NCBI GenBank assembly: GCA_013115145.1 | Contig: JAAPAO010000084.1 | Coordinates: forward strand, 1-64,000 | Length of the DNA stretch: 64,000 nucleotides | Direction: 5' to 3' | DNA from: Perkinsus chesapeaki ATCC PRA-425 | Lineage: Eukaryota > Protista > Perkinsozoa | Part shown: in pieces, positions 26,073 through 37,079 of the stretch | How the letters are laid out: every line of letters begins with the position of its first letter | How positions within the stretch are numbered: position 1 is the first letter of the stretch | Program-made: the position numbers and the translations under genes | Notes under the pieces: model-generated | What the model was told of the DNA's origin: nothing | Databases searched by the model: none | What the model saw: only the letters and a program-made list of their open reading frames with translations

Positions 26073-29000
26073 CTAGCGCGGCTCTGTCATACAGCTGTTA
26101 GATGCTCGATCACACCATTTCCCATAAGGGCAGTCGTCATCAACTTTGCAGCAGCCTCCATTGTCGGAGCAGTGGATACCACAATTCGCACCTGACCATC
26201 GATGCTCATCATCTTTACTCTTCGTGCTGGCTTACCACTATAACCAGGAATACAAGTGCAGCTGCCAGTCTGTGTGAGGCCATCAGCGCTCACGTTACGG
26301 ACGCAGACACCTTGACCCGAACAGGGAACCTTCATAACGGTGATGTGGAGACAACGACCAACTGCATTGTGAAGGAAACCGGCTGCACTCACCTGGACCC
26401 AGGGCAGGAAGCTCGATGGCCCGCTAGGACATACACGATGACCGCAATGACAGGCTCTCTCGGGCTTGCCGAAATGGCTCTCGTACAGGCCCATAACTTC
26501 CTCGGATAACAGGGCGCCCCGCAGAAGCGTCACTGAATGTATGGCCCCGGAAAAGAAGTTATTGTGGGAATCGTCATGGAGGCCGACGATGCCTTCTAGA
26601 AGAGTACCAGTGAAGTTAGAAGCCGTCGAGAGATTCACGTACCTAAAAAATAAGAGTGAAACCGAAGCTAGCAAGGAATCGTGCTCTCACGCAGACGACC
26701 GAACGCCCATTATCAAGCGAGAATTGTTGTTCCATATCGAAGGGCTTGCCGAGGAGCTATTATAGGGCTGCCCGTATTTTTGACCGTTGCGGTAGAGAGT
26801 TATAATGTTTCCTCCGAATACAACGACGACTTGGACCTGGAAGACAATGCCAAGTGACGGCTCGGAATTGGCCGACAAGCTGTGTGGTGTTCTCCTTCGC
26901 GCCCAAGACGTCTCGGCTCCTGGTGTCTCCTTCGGATGCCAGCGACCATTCCCTAGGCTGCCTTAGACCGTATGTTATAGTGTCATATCTAAAACCATAT
27001 AGCGGCTACTACTGTCGTATGGTGTTCATCGGGAACACCTCAGGCCGCAGTTGGACGCATAGCAGTCCTCGATTCCAAAGACACCGCCGCCACCAGCGTG
27101 CTCGAGCAGGGTAAACTCTTTAACAGCGATAACGCGTAACCTCGAGTCGCCGTCCTCATAGCGATCAGGATGCCACATACGATCGCGGGCGCCACTCAGA
27201 TTGACACGGATGCAGCGGGCTTGGAAGTGTGTGGTCGTTGGAACGTAAAAAACGTATCTGGTAACGTACAAAAGGTCAATAACTTAATAAGGCAATACAC
27301 AAGCGGGATCTGTGACACTGTTCTGACCAAGACCTTAGCATAGGCTATAGATGTGGAGATAGCGATATGCCTAATGTGCTTACTCTTGGTTGTCTATAAT
27401 AGACTCAACTAGGTTAAATGATATGCAATCGGTGCTCTGATAGAGGTATATGTCTATGGCACGATAAAGGAACTCAAGGTAGATACCAGCTAAGTTGAAT
27501 AATTCAGAGAAATACACCTGACACGGTGTTCTCATTCGATACCCCACTGAGGAAAGTCCCACTGTAAAGACTGCATCCTCTACACCTTGTTTGGTGCTCC
27601 AGTAGGTCTCTCGGCTGCCGTCCAGGGCAGCTCCAGATGGGAAGGACCAAGTACCAGTCCGAGTCACACTATAATGCCAGCGAGCTAGATTCTGGAGAAC
27701 ACGGGTAAATTAGAGACAACCGACGCCCGCTGACCTGGTCGAGGCGAACATAGAGGTTTCTGATGGACATCCCTATCCTATTGGGCTCATTCGCGGCGTC
27801 ATCGAAAGGACGGACAAAGGATACCCTTAGGTAGCGCAACCTCACAAAGCCAGTGAACTGCTCTAGCTTCTCATCGAGATTCACTGGACCGATCACGCGT
27901 ATTTCTGAGGTGGCACAGAGAGTTGATTGGATAACCTCAGGAAGGCACCTGTCCAGGATACCGCATCCTCTGAGACCTCGAAAAACCTGTCACCGAGGGA
28001 AGCTGGCTGCATGCCCCACAGGCACCGGACCATGTCGACCGGGTAGACAGCGAGGAGGTCAAGAGTGATGGAGCCTGGTTCTTGGGGTGGCCCGGGGATT
28101 GACATCCACATGGTGGAGTTGTTCGGGGAGATCGCATTAGCTGGATCTACGGAAACAGAAAGTCTGGGCAAACAATAGCAGGTAGCCTGTAGCATTTCCC
28201 AACAAGTCCCACCAGGCTACCTCACCTGTAGTGAAAAGGTCAGAGGCCTCAGCGGTAGCCCCAGTCGGTTGCTGGTTGTCCTCTGCCCTCCAGACCTCAA
28301 TCTCCGCTATTCGGAATTGCGCTGCCAAAGGGTCTACGTTCTCGTGCATCCTCACCCAGATGCGTCGGGCAGGTCGAAGGAGCAAAACCTGTTCCTCGGC
28401 TAGAAAGGTGCTGTAGAAGCGTAGCGGACCTCGTTGATCTCGTCGGTGTTCTCAGTGAAGCTCATGACCTCCGTGTACTCTCCGCTTCGATCTTCCAGGT
28501 CCACCGAAAATCGTTTACAGATGTTCACAGAGTTCCAGCTGAGATTGCGCATGCTAGTGGAGCCGTGCGTCAGCGGTCTCACATAATGCGTATCTTTCCG
28601 ATCATAGCATCGGTTGCGGGCGAGCTAGACACGTAAGCTCGAATCCACGTCTCCAATGAACCAACATTCACCGAAAATTTCCTGAAAACAAGGTACAGTG
28701 TGGAAGGCCAACACAGTCCCTGGAGACGCACGAGGCGCTGAGGCCGTCGAATGCATAGAGAGGATGCTCCGTATAGTCGGAAGCCTCAAAACCGCCAAAG
28801 CAGCATCCGCTCCAACAAGTATTGGTTGTGCACTTTGTCCCAGGGGTATAAACCCTGAGGCTCCGGAGCGCTAAATACAGAAGCGAGGCACTTCTTGGCT
28901 TCGCAGCCTCATAATCTTACCCGTGAGCGGGACAGATTGATAGTTGTTGGATGCTTCCACGGTTACCCGGAACCTATCGCAGGTGAAGCCCTTTCTTAGG

Positions 29001-32000
29001 TACGTACTTTGCAGATTCCCGGTGATAGTGAGGCCGGTGAAAGAGTACTGCATGGACATCAATCGTAGAGCATTACCGAGTGCTCAACTCACTGGTGGAC
29101 TCCATGCAGCTTGGGCAAGGTTCCAGTAGTATATAGAGAACTCTCGAGGAGCCGCTAGCCACGTAAATAGTATTCCTGATACTTCAGTACCGGACCCTGG
29201 TGATGCAAATTCGAATGTGGCAGAAGGGGAAGCAGCTGCTCCAGGGTTTGGAATCCAGAAGGTCTGAACCAGAGCAGTGGAAGCCAAGGCTTGGCTACCG
29301 GACAAGACTACCCTCAGGGAACAACAATTTATATACCCGAGGCTCTACAAGTTTTCCTAGTGCGGATAAAAAACTGACAATTTGATAAAAAATATATTCC
29401 CTGTGAAGAGGATCTAATGCGTTTCCAACAACCAGTTGTTGGTCACGATGTTGTTGTCAACAGCTGCTCCTTTAGGGCTCCATGAATCGATTCCGAAGCC
29501 ACTAAACAACTGCCTACCGAGTCGAGATCGTCAAGAGCTTGATCTGGATAATACTCGGCTGCCGAAGCTTGAGTGTCAGACCATATACTCTTCCCAAGCT
29601 GCAGCTGTGTATCAAAGGTAACGTCCACACTGTAGATGCTATACAGCTTCGGTTGCCAAAGGCCATCTGCCTGGGAACCGGTTGTTGGAAGATGCCAGCG
29701 CACGCGGCTGGTACCGAAGCCAAGTCGTAAGCTCTCCGAGTCATCGATAGTTTAATGTAGTTCGCTTGGAAGTACTCGCTGATGACGACGGTTTTAGCAG
29801 TATTGCCGCGATGCTGCTTAAATAGGGACCAGCTGCTCTTGTCCAATGACAGGTAAACATCAAAATCTAGGGGCTCGTCACGGAACTAATGAAACAAAGG
29901 TTCCTAAGCGAAATTGGAGTGCGACGGTATCTTCACCTTGAAGACAACTCTCGACACAAAGTAGGGATGGAGGACCTTGGCCGTTGCTATGTCTCTCAAG
30001 GTGATGATAAGATCGGCCTCGTTAGCATCCACCTCGCTCACCCAAAAGGTCGAATCCACCCTGAGCCCATATCAAGTCGCACTATACCCAACCAACGCAC
30101 CCGTCGACAGCCTTGGAAGCCGAATGATCCCAGTGGGCATTTGAAACCGCACTGGCGCCCCGATTGCTAAGTGCAAGGTTTCCTGACTGGTAAACCTCGA
30201 AAGCTTCCAATCGGTATTCAGTGGAAAATGTATCTATACTCGGCCGTGTATTCGGGCGCAGTGAAAGGCTACTTTCCGCTAGCTCCGCAGGCAGCCTCAA
30301 AGTGAACATCAAATGCAGCGCAGGTCGCGTCGTGAACTTGATAACAATACTGCTGTCTTTGTTGAGGTCAGTCGTATAGACTGTAAGAGAGCTCCAGTCA
30401 CAGTCACTCACAATCGGCTCGAGGCATATTCCTAGGGTGTAGGCGCGCGGGAATGAAGAGGCCTCAAAGATGGCACGGACACCCCAGACATCCTCAACGT
30501 TAGCGAGGGTGACTTGAAGGTAGTGCACTCCTTCGGCATCAAGGGTTCGAGCAGCCGAGGCTGCAACACCATCAAGAGCAAACTGAGCTCCGATGAGCGA
30601 ACTCTCATAGATGGCTTGGAAGGCCGCATCGGCTCGTTTGACTTCAATCTCCGCGATTCTCACCAAGCCATCTGGAGGACCGGCTTTGAAGGTCACCCGG
30701 ATGCACTGCAGACAGCCGTGGGTTACCGAAAGATACACACCCTCGGTCGAAGGGAAGCTCGGGGCCTGAGCGCGATCAGCATGGTTTGCCATTAAGACCA
30801 GACAACTGCCATGCTGCACCTGGTTGGCATTCCCCGGTCCATAAGACTCGCCAGGATCAGAATAATCGGCGCAATCCGAGCTTCCTTGTATAACGAACTC
30901 TCCCGCTGTGTAAGCTTGCGCTCCGAACCACAAAATGACCTTCGAAAGATTGACGCAAGAGCCGAGGTCCAAGGTGTATGTTGGTTGCTGCGAGGCGGGA
31001 ACGTCTGTATACCAGAACCTATGCGATAAGGAGCTTTGAAATCAGCGAATATGGAAGCGCGCACGTCTCCAAGTCACCGTCAACTGCAAGGGAGGTATCT
31101 GCCGACGGAGCTGTTATCTGTGTTGCCAATGGCGTGCTTGTAATAGCTATGTTGTCGAACGCTGAGTACGCCTCAATAGCGGCAAGGCCCATTATCTGAT
31201 GCAAGATGTATCGACCGTTCGTAGCGCAAATAGCTGTCCCCAGCACACAACTGTACCCAGTCATCTCCTGCTCTGTCGACCATGCTGTCCTTCATTAGTG
31301 TCACTCTTAAGAAACGACGATAAAACGTACCAAAGGCCCGGATGCGCATGGCGAAGTAATAGTTGAACGGATCGATCTTCACTATGCGACCAGAAGGGCA
31401 GGAGTACTCAATGGCATCTTCAGTGCTCAGGAGCCCGAGGTCGCCCAGCGCCGGGCTCCAGAAGCAGCTGTCCCTCCAAGACTCCGTCGCCCCATCTCGG
31501 AGCTGAACACGGAATGCAGCCGACCGGTAGCTTAACCTCAGATGCACGACGTCGATTGGGAGCCTGGCGTTCAAGTCGACGATGATGCCAAAATCTGTAA
31601 CATCTGAGACAGCACCGGTTGCGGACACACCGGTGATGCTGAGGTACGAAGGTTGCCTAGCGCCGTACGGCACACGGAAGTCTGTGGAATCGTCACCATC
31701 GATTGCATGAATAGGGTCGCCTCTGGTGACAAAGATGCCTTCACCTGCCTCAGCGGCCAGCCAAGAGGTACCGGCAACGTAGTTATAAGTAGAATCCAAA
31801 CCAAGCGCCAGATTCGAGGTTAACCCGAAGATTCTGACCTCCACCACACCTGCGGTGGCCGCATTGGAGTGGGGCTGCTCTATCACCAGCTTCACCTTCT
31901 GAATCGGCGCGTGAGACTTGTAAGTGAACGGGTTCGGGTTGCTGACCGTGTTCTGAGTAGCCGAGTAGATCTCTCTGTAGGAGAGGCCATTGTCCATGGA

Positions 32001-35000
32001 GATCAGCCAGCTAAAGGAGCGTGCCGGAAAAGCCGGATCCAGTTGAACCTCGAAGCGCCCTAAGGAGACCCCAGCACCAGTGGCGGCTGCCACATCCATG
32101 ACAATAGCGTCTGAGACCCCCATGATAAAGGAAGCGTTAGTCAGGTTGTCCACGGCCAATGAGGGATCGGCACACGGTACAAGAGTACGCTCGTTGATGC
32201 ACGTAAGGTTATGTGGGTACACCAGATTGCTGGCAAGGTTGGCATCTGTCCAGGCGTAGAGCTCAACTTCGGCAATTTGGAGGATCGACGAGGAATAATA
32301 AGGGGCGCCTTGGGACACCGCAAGTTGGAAATGGCGAAGGGAGAGTCCACCAGGGATGTGGTCAAACGGGAGCTCCATGCTTTGGACCGTTGAAACTGAA
32401 AGTGGCCTGTAGAATCATCGACAGTGCGAAGCCTACCGGTGTCACAAGTGCTGGTAGAGCAAGCCAGTGGGGACCAGCTTGAGCCGTCACTGCTGTAGGA
32501 GAAGTCCACCGCGCCAGGAACGTAACCTTTTCTGAATCTTACTCGGATCAAGCTCACTGCGGTCCGGATTTGGCCCAAATCAACCCGCAACCAAGCAGAG
32601 TCCTGCCCAGGCTGCGCGCTCCACCAAGTGTGGTCGTCACCGTCAAACGCGTAGGCTGGTGGGTAGTTCCATCGATTAACAAAGCTAACTGGCTTAAGTC
32701 TCGCGATGTTAGTGTCCAGCTTAACCTCGACCTCGCGTATACTGTACACGAACAGGTTGGCACTCGGTCCCGGCCCGCGGACAGTAGCTGCCCTATGCAT
32801 GCTGATACGGAGCATCTCAGCTGCGAAGAAAACTGTACTGGTGGTAGTGTTGAGTGAATTGTCCTCATAAGTGTCAACAATCGTCCATGATGATCCACCA
32901 TCAAGAGATACTTCTATATCGAAATCCAATGGTCTATGAAACCAATGGATCACAGTTTCCTCAGCGTAGATGGTGCCGTTGAAGTCGACCTCCCAAGTAG
33001 CCTCGAAATTTCGAACCACGCTCACGTGGCTCGACCAATAAGTACTCATGTCGCCGTCAACAGCCATCTCCGAGGCATAGGCCTCGCTCCACTCCGAAGT
33101 CACCGTAGAAGTGGTAGAGTTTTTCACACCAAGATTCGTCACCTCTTCGCTGCTGTTAACGGTTACCCAGACCTCCAGTGTCTTGTCAGCCAACTGGCCC
33201 CAGGCAGCCGGCAGCGGGTCAGTGTAGGCCCACTGCTTTTGTTCCTTGTCCAAGATCATAGCGCCACCCACTATCGGCGCACCGTTTTCAATGTGGCAGC
33301 CCAAGCCGGAGCCGAGGGAGTCGTGGCAACCGGTAGTGTCGTTGAAGACAAATCTCGCCAGTTTGGTGTAGCACTTGTCCCGACTGGTGAGCTCACAGAT
33401 GGCATTGATACACTCGAGGCCGTCATACCACACAGTGTTGTTAATCGCGGAAAATCTCGATAGGACTTGGGAGGGCAAAGTGTTCATCGCCAGCAAGTTA
33501 GGAGCGCACACCGCGCCGACCTCGGTGAAGTCCCGGCCGGGACACTCGGTCAGAAAGTGCGTGGCGACACCGTTGAAGAGGTCGGTTGTGTTCTCGAAGA
33601 GCGGCGGAAGGGAGACTGCCAACTCCTGGCATGCCGACCACGGGTCATTGCCGGCGTTGATGGCCGAGTAGGCGCATTCCTTCAGCTGGTTCCTGTAGAA
33701 ATAGTTGAGCTCCAACCTGTAGAAAAGAGCCGGTGCAAGTGGAACAGCTGACACCCGAAATGCTACAACTTGGGTCCTGCAAACATGCACGTTGCACAGC
33801 TCTGCCCAGCGGGCCAATGGAGGAACGGCACTCGAGTCGGCGGGCCACACTGGTACTTGCAGAACTCCGCATCGTATAGCGAAAGGCAATCAAAGCACTC
33901 CTGAGGAACAGTGATCCTGCCAGGCTCGTTATAAGGAGTATTGGCAGTCGTAATATGCTAACCTGTCTAGTTCGCTGCAGTGTCCTCAGTAGGAATACGG
34001 CATGAGACTGCATCTGCCCGCGAACGTTCAAGTAGTTATTGACGCCATCACCCATATCTTTGCAATCACACGTGTCACCCTTAACCTCTCCATTGCCCGG
34101 CAGCCCATTCCCATCAGCCCAATACAAGAATTGCGGCTTAGGTGTTACCTGAAATGAAGGTGAATTTCTTGGTGCATTGAAGATATGTTCCACATTCAAG
34201 CAAGAGGTCAGGCCATTCGACCTTCCTCGACAACCTCGTACTCTGCCAGGCAGCAATCGGTGAATGCCTAGCACTTACCTGCGGTGCCGTGGGGTATCCG
34301 ATTCGGTAGACCTGATAAGCTCTACTACACGTCCCAGCTTTATAAACATAACCACAGTGACTATCGTACTTGCACCCTGAGAAATTCTTGCGCGCCAGGA
34401 AATAAAAGACGGCCACCAACCTCGACACACCGAGTGCTTCTGGTATTGCAGCAGTGGCCTGCCCTCATTCAGCCCACCGACCGGCGGCAGCTGCCTCCAG
34501 GGGTCGGCAGTCACAGCGAAGGACGAGTCCAGGGCGTCCCACGTCATCTGGGAGGCCTCCAAACATGTGCACGTGAAGCCATACCGCTCGCCGCAGCGCT
34601 CTTGGTGGAACACAGAGTACATGTTCTGCATAGCAAAGACTCGAGTGCAGTAATCACAGTTGCACTGGGCAAAGTAGAGACGATAAGGGTTATAGCGGTG
34701 CTCCATCACGCAGTAATGAAAGAGGGAGCGCTTCTTGAAGGAAACCTACATACGAGGAGATGGATGGTGAGCTTATCTGGCATCCGAATATACAACGGCG
34801 GCGGTGAGGTCCATTACGCTACCGGCTTAAAAATGGTTGCCGAAGATTTCATCCCAAATGATAAGATACGCTTCTTCGTAACAAGAATCCATGGATGGCG
34901 CATGCAAACTTTGTGAAGGCGGTTCGAGTGACCGAGGGTTCGAGTGAGGCCTTCAGTTGGCCGTCCCTTACCGTTCCAGCGCCGGTGGCGATATTGAGCA

Positions 35001-37079
35001 GATGCGTGTCATCGACCTTGACGCTCCGTGTTCCATCTTGGCTCGTAATGACCAGCGCTCCCAGTGAGTTGGTGAAACGGAACTCCTTCTGGCAGCCCAG
35101 GAAATAGGGGTGCATCTGGTCCCATTCCAGGAGACCATTCCGGCACGGCCGACTCCTATAGGACTTCACCGAGCTTAAGGCAGATTGACCGGCTGTAGCT
35201 TCATTGGTACCGTTCCGCAACAGGGCGTCTGTGTATATAGCGGAGACTTCAACAGCGGTACGACCAACATTCTGAATTACGATGGCGCAGTGCCTGCCAC
35301 GGAGCCATCGGCGAACAGGGATTTATGACGCCTTACGTATTGCCAGAAATCCCAGTGCATGACTGGAGGGTGTCAAGAGGCCTCTGCTCGTTATCACAGA
35401 CAGCCACGCCGCTCGAAACAACGCCCTTCCGCCCAACCCCGCTGACAGCACCAACAAGTTCGCTGTAGTCTCCACCTGGACACCTATCGTGCGTCCTCAA
35501 TTTCCAACTTAGTATCGTTGGAGCAGCAAATTGCTCCACATCAGTGGCGGCCACGAAGCCCACCCAGGCATTGCCGGGCCTCGGATCATCTTCCCCTTTG
35601 GTCACATTCGGGTGCTCATACGTCTGCACGCCATCAGCTCGTACCACCTTCGCCAAGTCGACCAATGTGTTGATAACCAGCTGACCATTAATTTCCACAC
35701 TCAGAGCCCCAACTCTGCCATTAACCCAGTTCTCCAGTGCATATAGCTGCTGGCTTCCCCCTATAAAATCAGTGGACCAGCCAGTGAAGGGTCTGTCCCA
35801 TCGGGGCTCGCCGTTCTGCACGTCGTAGCGTATCGTCACTTTATGCGTGCCATTCCTCAGCTGTGGTAAACGGTCGCCAGTCGCCTCCGCCAGCATGTTC
35901 ACAGCGTGGTCACCCGAGTTCGCCGTTTCGCCCTCATTTGCCTGCTTCGCCCACGGCACCATCACCGCAACATGATTCCAGGTCGCGTCGTTCGAACCCG
36001 CGTCAAAAAAGAAGTCAAATTCCACCGCCAAGTTTCGCGCAAAGCTGTAGCCCAACTGTCCGGCTTCCGAGCCTGCTATCTTCGCTTCCAGAGACGGCGG
36101 ACTGCCTTCATTCTGGACCACGAAAGCGAAGCCTCGGCCACCTTGTGGCATGCACCACCGTCGGCCTTCACTTGTTGGTGCCGATATCGGACAGTACAGT
36201 GAGGCGTGGAGCACCGTAAAGTAGAAAGTAGTCTCGAAGCCATAGGCGACCGCTTGCTTCTCCTTGAAAAATACACCTCCGTACCGCTCTGGTTTCGGAG
36301 ACACTAGGCGTGCACCATACACGCAGATCTAAGTGCAACGGATGTGTCCAGGGGAGGCCGAGGCCTCACCTGAGGCCTGCTATGTGGCAGAGGATCCAGG
36401 CCACCGTCCGGGACCCAATCGGTCGTTCGACATACGTACGTATACGATTTATTAACGACCTTCCCTGCCTGGGAGCTGTCCAAGTAGGCAAAGGCGTTCG
36501 GGTGTGTGGGAGGGCATGGGCCCTGATAGACGTTAATTTGCCGGGGCGCCAACGGCTCATCTGTTCTGAGAAACATGTGTATGCTATGGCTCCTGTTTTC
36601 AAGACTACGAGATTCCACTATAAATAAGCTCAAAGCTCCAGGGCAAGCTGGAGTTCAGGTGCCATCCCCATTTCTAGTATGAGAGTAACCTGGCCTTTGC
36701 CTACCCGTTATCAGTTGGTGCGGCATAGAAGCCAGTGCCAGTAGAAGGAAACGAAACGCTGACTTACCGCATCTGCTGAAAGCGGAAGTAGTCGGGTGAT
36801 CTCGGCTGCGTCCGAGAGTCGTCTATCACTTGTGCCATCGCCGTATCGTTGCAATATTCCTCTTGGAATTCCGTGGAGAAAAAGCCGATCTGAAAAGGTT
36901 AAATGAGATACTAAAAATGGCAGCTTGAATCCCACCTCGGCGTCCAGCAAGACGTGCATCCCTGTCAAACTGCCGGTCGGATCCACCCGGAAGCGATCAA
37001 TGTCGATATCGCTGCGCACGATAGTGGCGCTAATCAACAATAGGAGGATTAGGCTCCATTGGGGTAGCATAAGTAACAC
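26073..37079 (-). CDS. Giant secreted multi-lectin protein: signal peptide, L-type lectin, split LamG-like domain enclosing tandem F5/8-type-C repeats, EGF-like/Cys-rich C-terminus
   Basis: Signal LILLLLISATIVRS; legume-lectin motifs (FETTFYF, GGRGFAFVVQN, LAVEFD, NHVAV; ORF 35333-36322); repeated AxDGD..T.W motifs (AVDGDMSTYW, AFDGDDHTWW, AIDGDDSTDF, AVDGDLET, ALDGSRETYW); CSGQGVC...CTCIPGYSG EGF-like; stop at 26073; no TM segment seen. Confidence 0.8.

Follow-up and report, generated by a model that had tools for sequence, protein, structure and literature searches.

Does the long minus-strand gene at this locus of Perkinsus chesapeaki encode one LamG domain, split by a tandem array of discoidin repeats, or two separate pieces at either end of the array? 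A preliminary description of the window (the whole analysed stretch of contig JAAPAO010000084.1, 64,000 nucleotides) had proposed the former. We examined the gene model, the two junctions, the LamG parts, the inserted repeats and the relatives of the protein.

The gene encodes a predicted secreted multi-lectin protein

The gene was modelled ab initio by dynamic programming, and four junctions were corrected by hand with the relatives as a guide. All introns are GT-AG, ranging from 40 to 202 nt and mostly 40–64 nt long. The model is uncertain at three micro-exons (25, 34 and 16 nt) and at several internal junctions. A previous version, lacking the 5' exons, aligned collinearly in a single alignment with a 2,855-aa relative (P0005) over residues 2–2869 of 2,917. 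The main features are as follows.

37070 to 26073, minus strand: whole gene, ~32 exons, ~3,049 aa; ATG at 37070, stop at 26075–26073
37011 to 37070, minus strand: putative signal peptide MLPQWSLILLLLISATIVRS, recognised by eye from the translation
35337 to 36328, minus strand: L-type (legume-like) lectin domain (Pfam Lectin_legB, 29.1 bits; cutoff 26.3)
33140 to 33373, minus strand: LamG N-part, aa ~1029–1106, ending in ...KTLEVWVTVNSSEEV (match to the unsplit bacterial profile; hhalign)
27104 to 33139, minus strand: F5/8-type-C (discoidin) array, aa 1107–2788, 1,682 aa (family repeat HMM)
26480 to 27103, minus strand: LamG C-part, aa 2789–2951 (in-frame splice model, alignment with nine relatives, profile matches)
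26076 to 26479, minus strand: EGF-like module and Cys-rich C-terminal tail (...GGCCKVDDDCPYGKWC...; Pfam EGF E 0.005, under the family cutoff)

The product is thus predicted to be a secreted multi-lectin protein of ~3,049 aa. Its predicted domain order is signal peptide, L-type lectin, a Cys-rich region of ~700 aa, LamG N-part, 10–11 discoidin units, LamG C-part, EGF-like module and Cys-rich tail. The L-type lectin domain was also detected in the relatives by Pfam scan, and the EGF-like module and Cys-rich tail can be aligned with theirs. A hydrophobic C-terminal end is absent from the predicted protein.

The region 26076–32000 is covered with 0 differences by DNA contigs from two public runs, and one contig from an independent run spans all of it. 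Two small public RNA runs yielded zero contigs matching the locus, and searches of sequencing runs returned no RNA run containing it.

Both junctions lie within continuous reading frames

On the minus strand, KLARFVF begins at 33364, ...SSEEV finishes at 33140 and TNLG begins at 33139, so that the N-part runs directly into the discoidin array inside one stop-free ORF (33889–32144). At the opposite end, ...RVIAVKEFTLL finishes at 27104 and EHAGGGGVFGIE begins at 27103, both in the ORF 27283–27029 (minus strand). The peptides quoted in the preliminary description were located at both junctions as it had claimed. Each junction is in-frame and without a linker, and because both lie within continuous ORFs, neither depends on a splice.

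The C-part itself is encoded by four exons (27103–27039, 26988–26877, 26836–26691 and 26642–26480), separated by GT-AG introns at 27038–26989 (50 nt), 26876–26837 (40 nt) and 26690–26643 (48 nt). The C-half quoted beforehand skipped the exon 26988–26877 (YDTITYGLRQPREWSLASEG...), which the relatives place within the domain.

The two LamG parts are complementary in sequence

The N-part supplies the opening third of a LamG/ConA-like domain, and the C-part, directly after the last discoidin strand, to the remaining two thirds. For comparison, we used a profile of 219 columns from the unsplit LamG domains of Planctomycetota and Verrucomicrobiota proteins. The N-part matched positions 24–75 with 22.4 bits; the highest score among 2,000 shuffled controls was 6.4 bits, and 0 of the 2,000 reached 22.4. 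The C-part matched positions 80–210 with 66 bits. By hhalign, the N-part occupies columns 12–77 (probability 98.1%, E 9e-14) and the C-part the adjacent columns 81–212 (probability 99.8%, E 1e-27), so that the two parts are complementary in sequence. When the N-part and C-part were fused in silico, one continuous match ran across the junction (profile 28–181, 87.5 bits; 92 bits in total).

These comparisons support the idea, put forward in the preliminary description, that the N-part and C-part are complementary pieces of one LamG domain, of the type found in PVC bacteria. All regions of the Laminin_G_3 profile, N-terminal and C-terminal strands alike, are present, though not contiguous in sequence. 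In Pfam searches, one C-part exon of this gene matched Laminin_G_3 at profile 83–125 (E 0.0017, 19 bits; cutoff 27.6). The C-part of the relative P0005 matched at 45–125 with 46.2 bits against the same cutoff, that of P0009 gave 29.6 bits, and the whole P0005 protein 36.1 bits; the N-part of P0006 showed a weak match at profile 3–38. Neither the N-part nor the C-part profile found a match among solved structures.

We also considered that each half might be completed into its own LamG domain by neighbouring sequence. We rejected this, as each inner junction adjoins a discoidin domain and a search for further LamG-type pieces elsewhere in the gene found none, so neither half can be completed in this way. 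In an AlphaFold2 model of the exon that carries the N-part, discoidin unit 1 was confident; the N-part was incomplete and showed no packing against upstream sequence.

An unsplit bacterial relative modelled with AlphaFold2 (pLDDT 91.6) gave Foldseek matches to ConA-like domains. On this model the insertion site is the loop 74–81, between strands 65–73 and 82–88, which places the discoidin array in an eight-residue loop between the strands KTLEVWVTV and GGGGVFGIE. Host segments flank the insert and the site is a host loop, as in a domain insertion of the A1-B-A2 kind. We infer that the strands of both parts would fold together as one sandwich.

The insert is a plain tandem array of discoidin units

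The array contains 10 clear discoidin units and one degenerate unit, listed here with the E values of the repeat HMM.

32723 to 33139, minus strand: unit 1, directly after the LamG strand (E 2e-37; unit 1 is also its top match in 8 of the 9 relatives)
32229 to 32722, minus strand: unit 2, including a 41-nt intron at 32436–32396 placed with the P. olseni ortholog as reference (E 1e-40)
31803 to 32228, minus strand: unit 3, divergent (E 4e-14)
31473 to 31790, minus strand: unit 4, divergent, partial match (E 1e-9)
30613 to 31225, minus strand: unit 5 (E 9e-21)
30325 to 30519, minus strand: degenerate discoidin-sized unit, doubtful (E 0.44)
29733 to 30249, minus strand: unit 6 (E 5e-36; closest to unit 6 of Vitrella and of the dinoflagellate relatives)
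28901 to 29720, minus strand: unit 7, in several small exons (E 2e-23)
28263 to 28766, minus strand: unit 8 (E 4e-13)
27807 to 28259, minus strand: unit 9 (E 3e-18)
27104 to 27806, minus strand: unit 10, whose last strand RVIAVKEFTLL adjoins the LamG C-part (E 1e-34)

Pfam F5_F8_type_C matched units 1–2 with 72.9 bits (cutoff 28.2), and AlphaFold2 modelled unit 1 as all-beta with pLDDT 70–93. Only the family-specific HMM picks up units 3, 4 and 8 and the degenerate unit. An earlier estimate of about a dozen repeats was slightly high.

The split is kept in distant relatives

The same split was found in nine near-full-length relatives (P0002–P0010) from Vitrella, dinoflagellate transcriptomes and other assemblies. 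In these proteins the two LamG pieces lie 1,400–1,700 residues apart, and 10 to 12 repeats occupy the same loop. The repeat units correspond one-to-one by position between species: unit 10, for instance, matches the last unit before the C-part in 8 of the 9 relatives, and unit 10 of 12 in Vitrella. The Vitrella protein has 12 F5/8 type C stretches (417 bits summed), and its LamG domain carries an additional single discoidin nested in another loop.

Transcript-derived relatives (MMETSP, Polykrikos and a TSA entry) contain both halves in one ORF. The split, together with the positional match of repeats in distant relatives, indicates that the architecture is old and that it resides on single mRNAs elsewhere. 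The split arrangement is kept across Perkinsozoa, dinoflagellates and chromerids. Short relatives with few repeats were sought by word-index searches, which yielded only fragments and the long proteins already known.

Comparison with known systems

Outside these eukaryotic proteins, this LamG subfamily was seen unsplit, in proteins of Planctomycetota, Verrucomicrobiota and Kiritimatiellota. The unsplit Laminin_G_3 domains of PVC bacteria (PF13385; in DUF1549/DUF1553 proteins and GH32 fusions; for example P0264, P0257 and P0269) show the same motifs in the same order, namely W.F..., G.L.LDG and KTLEvWV.L, then RGGG...Q and FDAIVFGE..P..W.AGS, followed by YRNG..YG, FGLRH and G.i..a.lY.RAL...Ev. 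The bacterial consensus given in the preliminary description, KTLEAWV.L....Q.GGGV, proved to be real, as the unsplit relatives read ...KTLEAWVQLNNLSQRGGGVMTVQ... there. The bacterial domain is contiguous, with ~215 aa and a fixed eight-residue loop, whereas the eukaryotic proteins carry 1,400–1,700 residues at that loop. The partner domains of the bacterial LamG proteins are also unlike those of the split proteins.

Domain insertion is a common phenomenon. As in domain insertions generally, a host loop is interrupted here by autonomously folding domains. In a survey of inserted domains, the median length is 115 residues, usually less than the host (PMC13114784). Arrays of 8–10 small domains can also be inserted, as in SI3 of the cyanobacterial RNA polymerase beta' subunit, with 640–690 aa (PMC13114784). 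By comparison, the insert described here, at ~1,680 aa, is about 7 times the size of its ~240-aa host and forms a plain tandem array rather than a recursive nesting. In RTX adhesins, ligand-binding domains are projected from split beta-sandwich domains (PMC12077191, PMC10865825). The architecture is an extreme case of known domain insertion, in a protein family that has not been described.

Among alveolates, the apicomplexan PfCCp/PbLAP proteins are secreted multi-lectin proteins with discoidin, LamG and 'levanase'-type (ConA-like) modules (PMC10892792). The protein studied here resembles them in being a predicted secreted alveolate multi-lectin protein that combines discoidin and LamG. The lack of an LCCL domain led us to reject membership in the CCp/LAP family: Pfam found no LCCL match in the ORFs of the window, and no LCCL, ricin or PA14 in three relatives sharing this gene's domain order. 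A split LamG is likewise not described for the CCp/LAP family.

Discussion

We favour the reading, with a probability of roughly 0.8, that the LamG domain is split by the discoidin array in one loop and closes in cis, within a secreted multi-lectin protein acting as a glycan/lipid-binding platform. Once the chain has entered the ER, its discoidin domains would fold singly, while the six strands of the N-part wait for the seven strands of the C-part, which would emerge ~1,680 residues later. Closure of the sandwich in cis would then secure the array as a closed loop or rosette (a 'lasso'). The product would be a geometrically constrained, high-avidity platform for adhesion at the cell surface, wall or matrix, a function suggested by the domain types.

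Alternatively, the halves may pair in trans: as in 3D domain swapping, the N-part would join the C-part of a second molecule, and a wall or matrix protein would form dimers or head-to-tail polymers. At a separation of ~1,680 residues, closure in cis would lack the kinetic advantage of sequence proximity, and the predicted protein is secreted and multivalent. We nevertheless consider pairing in trans unlikely. Natural discontinuous domains normally close in cis, the termini of inserted domains are typically only ~14 A apart (PMC13114784), and in Vitrella the lone discoidin inside another LamG loop is consistent with simple insertion in cis.

Less likely still, the pieces may be decayed remnants of two LamG domains that once flanked the array and do not associate, the N-part being a relic or linker. 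The isolated N-part had no match in a Pfam search, and an AlphaFold2 model of its exon gave it low to moderate confidence (pLDDT 36–73). Against decay, profile columns 77 and 81 adjoin with neither overlap nor gap, so that two deletions, independent of each other, would need to coincide exactly. Conservation of the N-part also extends from Perkinsus to Vitrella, and residues including the E and W of TLEVW are invariant. A jelly-roll fold generally requires strands from both LamG parts.

An artefact, in which two genes or a misassembled repeat mimic a split, is hardly credible: some internal exons do rest on ab initio modelling and the small RNA runs are silent at the locus, but both junctions lie inside continuous ORFs, the independent DNA contig shows no differences, transcript-derived relatives keep the order in one ORF, and the divergence of the repeats makes repeat collapse unlikely.

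Here, one loop of a ~240-residue beta-sandwich appears to accommodate ~1,680 residues and 10–11 domains. If the halves reassemble, this would be, to our knowledge, among the most extreme natural discontinuous domains. It would then provide a natural test of the sequence distance over which parts of a fold can meet during secretion, and a template for ring-closed multivalent lectins. The trans version, if true, would represent a new principle by which protist cell coverings are assembled. We also entertain the rather doubtful idea that the split LamG might be a built-in clasp. It might hold 10–12 lectin domains (~1,700 residues) in a topologically closed cis ring, with a geometry fixed since the ancestor of perkinsids, dinoflagellates and chromerids, or join molecules in trans into a head-to-tail extracellular lattice.

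The finding defines an undescribed conserved family of predicted secreted myzozoan proteins; the unsplit LamG domains closest to theirs occur in marine PVC bacteria. Since the protein occurs in free-living and photosynthetic relatives, it probably has a general function in the cell coverings of myzozoans, not one tied to parasitism.

Gene model and inner junctions of the LamG domain

The locus is a multi-exon, minus-strand gene, and introns in this eukaryotic genome are very small. Both inner junctions of the LamG domain lie inside continuous ORFs and can therefore be read directly from the sequence. The ORF at 33889-32144(-) encodes ...CYTKLARFVFNDTTGCHDSLGSGLGCHIENGAPIVGGAMILDKEQKQWAYTDPLPAAWGQLADKTLEVWVTVNSSEEV and then, without a stop or a linker, TNLGVKNSTTSTVTSEW...AVDGDMSTYWSS, with which an F5/8-type-C (discoidin) domain begins; Pfam F5_F8_type_C matches this ORF in two stretches (72.9 bits). 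The ORF at 27283-27029(-) encodes ...RLRVIAVKEFTLLEHAGGGGVFGIE, the second inner junction. Both ORFs bear out the coordinates assigned to the junctions in the preliminary description.

Features of the split LamG domain
33373-33140, minus strand: LamG N-part
33139-27104, minus strand: discoidin array, aa 1107-2788 (1,682 aa; family-specific repeat HMM)
27103-26480, minus strand: LamG C-part
27038-26989, minus strand: GT-AG intron of the C-part, 50 nt
26876-26837, minus strand: GT-AG intron of the C-part, 40 nt
26690-26643, minus strand: GT-AG intron of the C-part, 48 nt

The spliced C-part reads EHAGGGGVFGIEDCYASNCGLRYDTITYGLRQPREWSLASEGDTRSRDVLGAKENTTQLVQVVVVFGGNIITLYRNGQKYGQPYNSSSASPSIWNNNSRLIMGVRSSAYVNLS...FFSGAIHSVTLLRGALLSEEVMGLY and is alignable end to end with nine relatives; it includes exon 26988-26877, which the C-half quoted earlier had missed. 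The remaining gene model was built by dynamic programming on codon, splice and intron length, and four junctions were corrected by homology. It runs from the ATG at 37070 to the stop at 26075-26073 in ~32 exons, encoding 3,049 aa with 0 internal stops; three micro-exons and some internal junctions are uncertain. Draft model2 (2,917 aa, without 5' exons) and the relative P0005 (2,855 aa) give a single collinear alignment over query residues 2-2869. Nearly all introns of the gene (26073-37070(-)) measure 40-64 nt and have canonical GT-AG ends. Several modeled exons are only 16-34 nt long, and automated annotation may therefore split the locus into fragments.

The model protein carries a signal peptide, MLPQWSLILLLLISATIVRS, and its C-terminus has no hydrophobic tail. 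Besides the split LamG and the array, it contains an L-type lectin (Lectin_legB), an EGF-like module and a Cys-rich tail with GGCC..DDDCP. The L-type lectin and the N-part are separated by a conserved Cys-rich stretch of ~700 aa (window 33827-35293(-), model aa ~330-1030), with motifs such as LFNGVATHFLTECPGRDF..GAVCAPN and NAICEL..R..CY; it has 0 assigned Pfam domains and low AlphaFold2 confidence.

Two DNA runs, which may themselves be the source of the assembly, cover 26076-32000: X3 in one contig with zero differences, and X4 in contigs that tile it. The X4 contigs break at window ~30569-30603 and 31822-31856, both bridged by the X3 contig; at each break lies a 35-nt piece with roughly twofold depth, the pattern that heterozygous sites or allelic bubbles would produce. 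Two small RNA runs labeled with the same species contained no sequence from the locus. Only orthologous transcripts from other species provide evidence that a single mRNA carries both halves.

Eukaryotic relatives

The top match, at 81% identity, is an incomplete Perkinsus olseni protein, which makes another Perkinsus species the most likely source of the window; the P. olseni ortholog entries are partial, at 499 and 967 aa. Across the boundary from the N-part to the first discoidin, the ORF is matched by nine relatives (1,789-3,320 aa), of which most are full-length and some are N-terminally truncated. Among them are Vitrella brassicaformis CEM39928 (3,320 aa), MMETSP transcripts (P0003, 2,651 aa; transcripts of 8.4 kb), one Polykrikos kofoidii Trinity transcript and one TSA transcript. 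The N-part is followed by the C-part 1,400-1,700 residues further on in 9/9 near-full-length relatives, and the C-part is present in an Alexandrium catenella fragment too. Junction motifs are conserved as ...TLEvWv.v..sE.vTN... and ...E(I/F)..(W/F)EH.GGGGV...

Two pieces of one LamG domain at sequence level

Searching with the C-part profile retrieved bacterial proteins with an unsplit domain, such as P0156 (...DKTLVSWVALADTKQRGGSALTIQCGEQFDAIVFGERAPGKWMAGSEFF...), and further search gave 124 of them from Planctomycetota, Verrucomicrobiota, Kiritimatiellota and others. The PF13385 annotation is shared by all 124, and fusion to GH32 or DUF1553/DUF1549 is frequent among them. The full N-terminal strands are present in DUF1549/DUF1553 members such as P0264 (PFAAWDFGKGTDDQIGKLNLSLHGGAKVENGALVLDGRAAFARSAPLTQPLRAKTLEAWVQLNNLSQRGGGVMTVQT...), which bear out the consensus KTLEAWV.L....Q.GGGV given in the preliminary description.

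An HMM built from ten unsplit bacterial domains matches the window N-part at positions 24-75 (22.4 bits; 2,000 shuffles <= 6.4) and the C-part at positions 80-210 (66 bits), with no further match elsewhere in the gene model. The in-silico fusion of the two halves, suggested earlier as a check, yields a single continuous alignment over positions 28-181 (87.5 bits; 92.4 total). Per whole relative, the HMM matches the N-part and C-part only. By profile-profile comparison, the N-part falls on columns 12-77 of the unsplit alignment (98.1%, E 9e-14) and the C-part on columns 81-212 (99.8%, E 1e-27), which indicates that, at sequence level, they are exactly complementary pieces of one LamG domain. 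Generic Pfam agrees more weakly: Laminin_G_3 matches from profile 45-125 and beyond in C-parts (P0005, 46 bits), and at profile 3-38 in one N-part (E 0.1).

We modeled the unsplit bacterial domain P0264:87-302 by AlphaFold2 with a 40-sequence alignment (pLDDT 91.6, pTM 0.89). The model is all-beta with 13 strands, and its Foldseek matches are the ConA-like sandwiches AbnA domain 4, trans-sialidase lectin domain and C-reactive protein. The insertion point lies within loop 74-81 (NNLSQRGG, eight residues), which connects strand 65-73 (KTLEAWVQL) to strand 82-88 (GVMTVQT); six strands precede the site and seven follow it.

In the model of window exon 33775-32477 (14-sequence alignment), discoidin unit 1 is confident (pLDDT 70-93). 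The N-part is partly formed (pLDDT 36-73), its KTLEVWV strand is not formed, and the region upstream has pLDDT < 30. The N-part is thus predicted to complete no domain with its neighbors.

The discoidin array

The array consists of 10 clear units and one degenerate unit-sized stretch; the earlier estimate of roughly a dozen repeats in ~1700 aa was right in size and slightly too high in count. By the same family-specific repeat HMM, the count is exactly 10 units in six dinoflagellate-type relatives and 12 in Vitrella; in P0005 and P0009, 9 units are detectable, with gaps. Best matches across species are positional (units 1-1, 2-2, 6-6, 7-7, 9-9, 10-10), so the array was present before perkinsids and dinoflagellates diverged. 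Variation in repeat number at this loop, raised in the preliminary description, spans 9-12 detectable units, and the array is no fast-varying repeat.

In Vitrella, a thirteenth discoidin (residues 2725-2838) occupies a different LamG loop, between profile positions 179 and 185, and the last LamG strands resume at 2862-2891. Its LamG (P0002 residues 2606-2891) is in three pieces, with the single discoidin separating the FGLHS strand from the FFSGRI...LY strands. This nested insert shows this LamG to be tolerant of discoidin inserts.

Discussion

In discoidin domains, as in the factor V/VIII C domains, the N and C termini are adjacent, so an array in the LamG loop would be sterically feasible. 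Inserted domains generally have close termini, ~14 Å apart (PMC13114784). The LamG sandwich of the secreted protein would form only once the whole array is made, and if it closed in cis, the 10-11 lectin domains would be held in a closed loop or rosette. Complementation of LamG halves in trans, giving dimers or polymers, seems to us improbable.

Domain insertion is common, occurring in 20% of multidomain proteins, with surveyed inserts of median 115 residues against hosts of 199 (PMC13114784). The multi-domain extreme cited there, cyanobacterial SI3, has 640-690 aa, whereas the discoidin insert in LamG has 1,682 aa. RTX adhesins have split beta-sandwich domains, which project ligand-binding domains (PMC12077191, PMC10865825). 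Neither the protein family nor a LamG interrupted by a discoidin array is described in the literature that our search, limited in reach, covered. Because surveyed inserts are small, SI3 is shorter and the searched literature describes none like it, we rate the split as a new, extreme case of domain insertion.

Among alveolate multi-lectin proteins, the closest group described is CCp/LAP. Pfam detected no LCCL, ricin or PA14 domain in three full-length relatives of the same domain order and no LCCL domain in the window ORFs, so the gene is not a CCp/LAP member.

The nearest unsplit relatives of the eukaryotic LamG are PVC-bacterial proteins (P0156-P0276), many of which start with the KTLV.WV strand as soon as the signal peptide ends and are fusions with GH32. 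The myzozoan LamG domain may therefore have come from bacteria, and there may also be a relation to the 'levanase' domains that apicomplexan CCp proteins are described as having.
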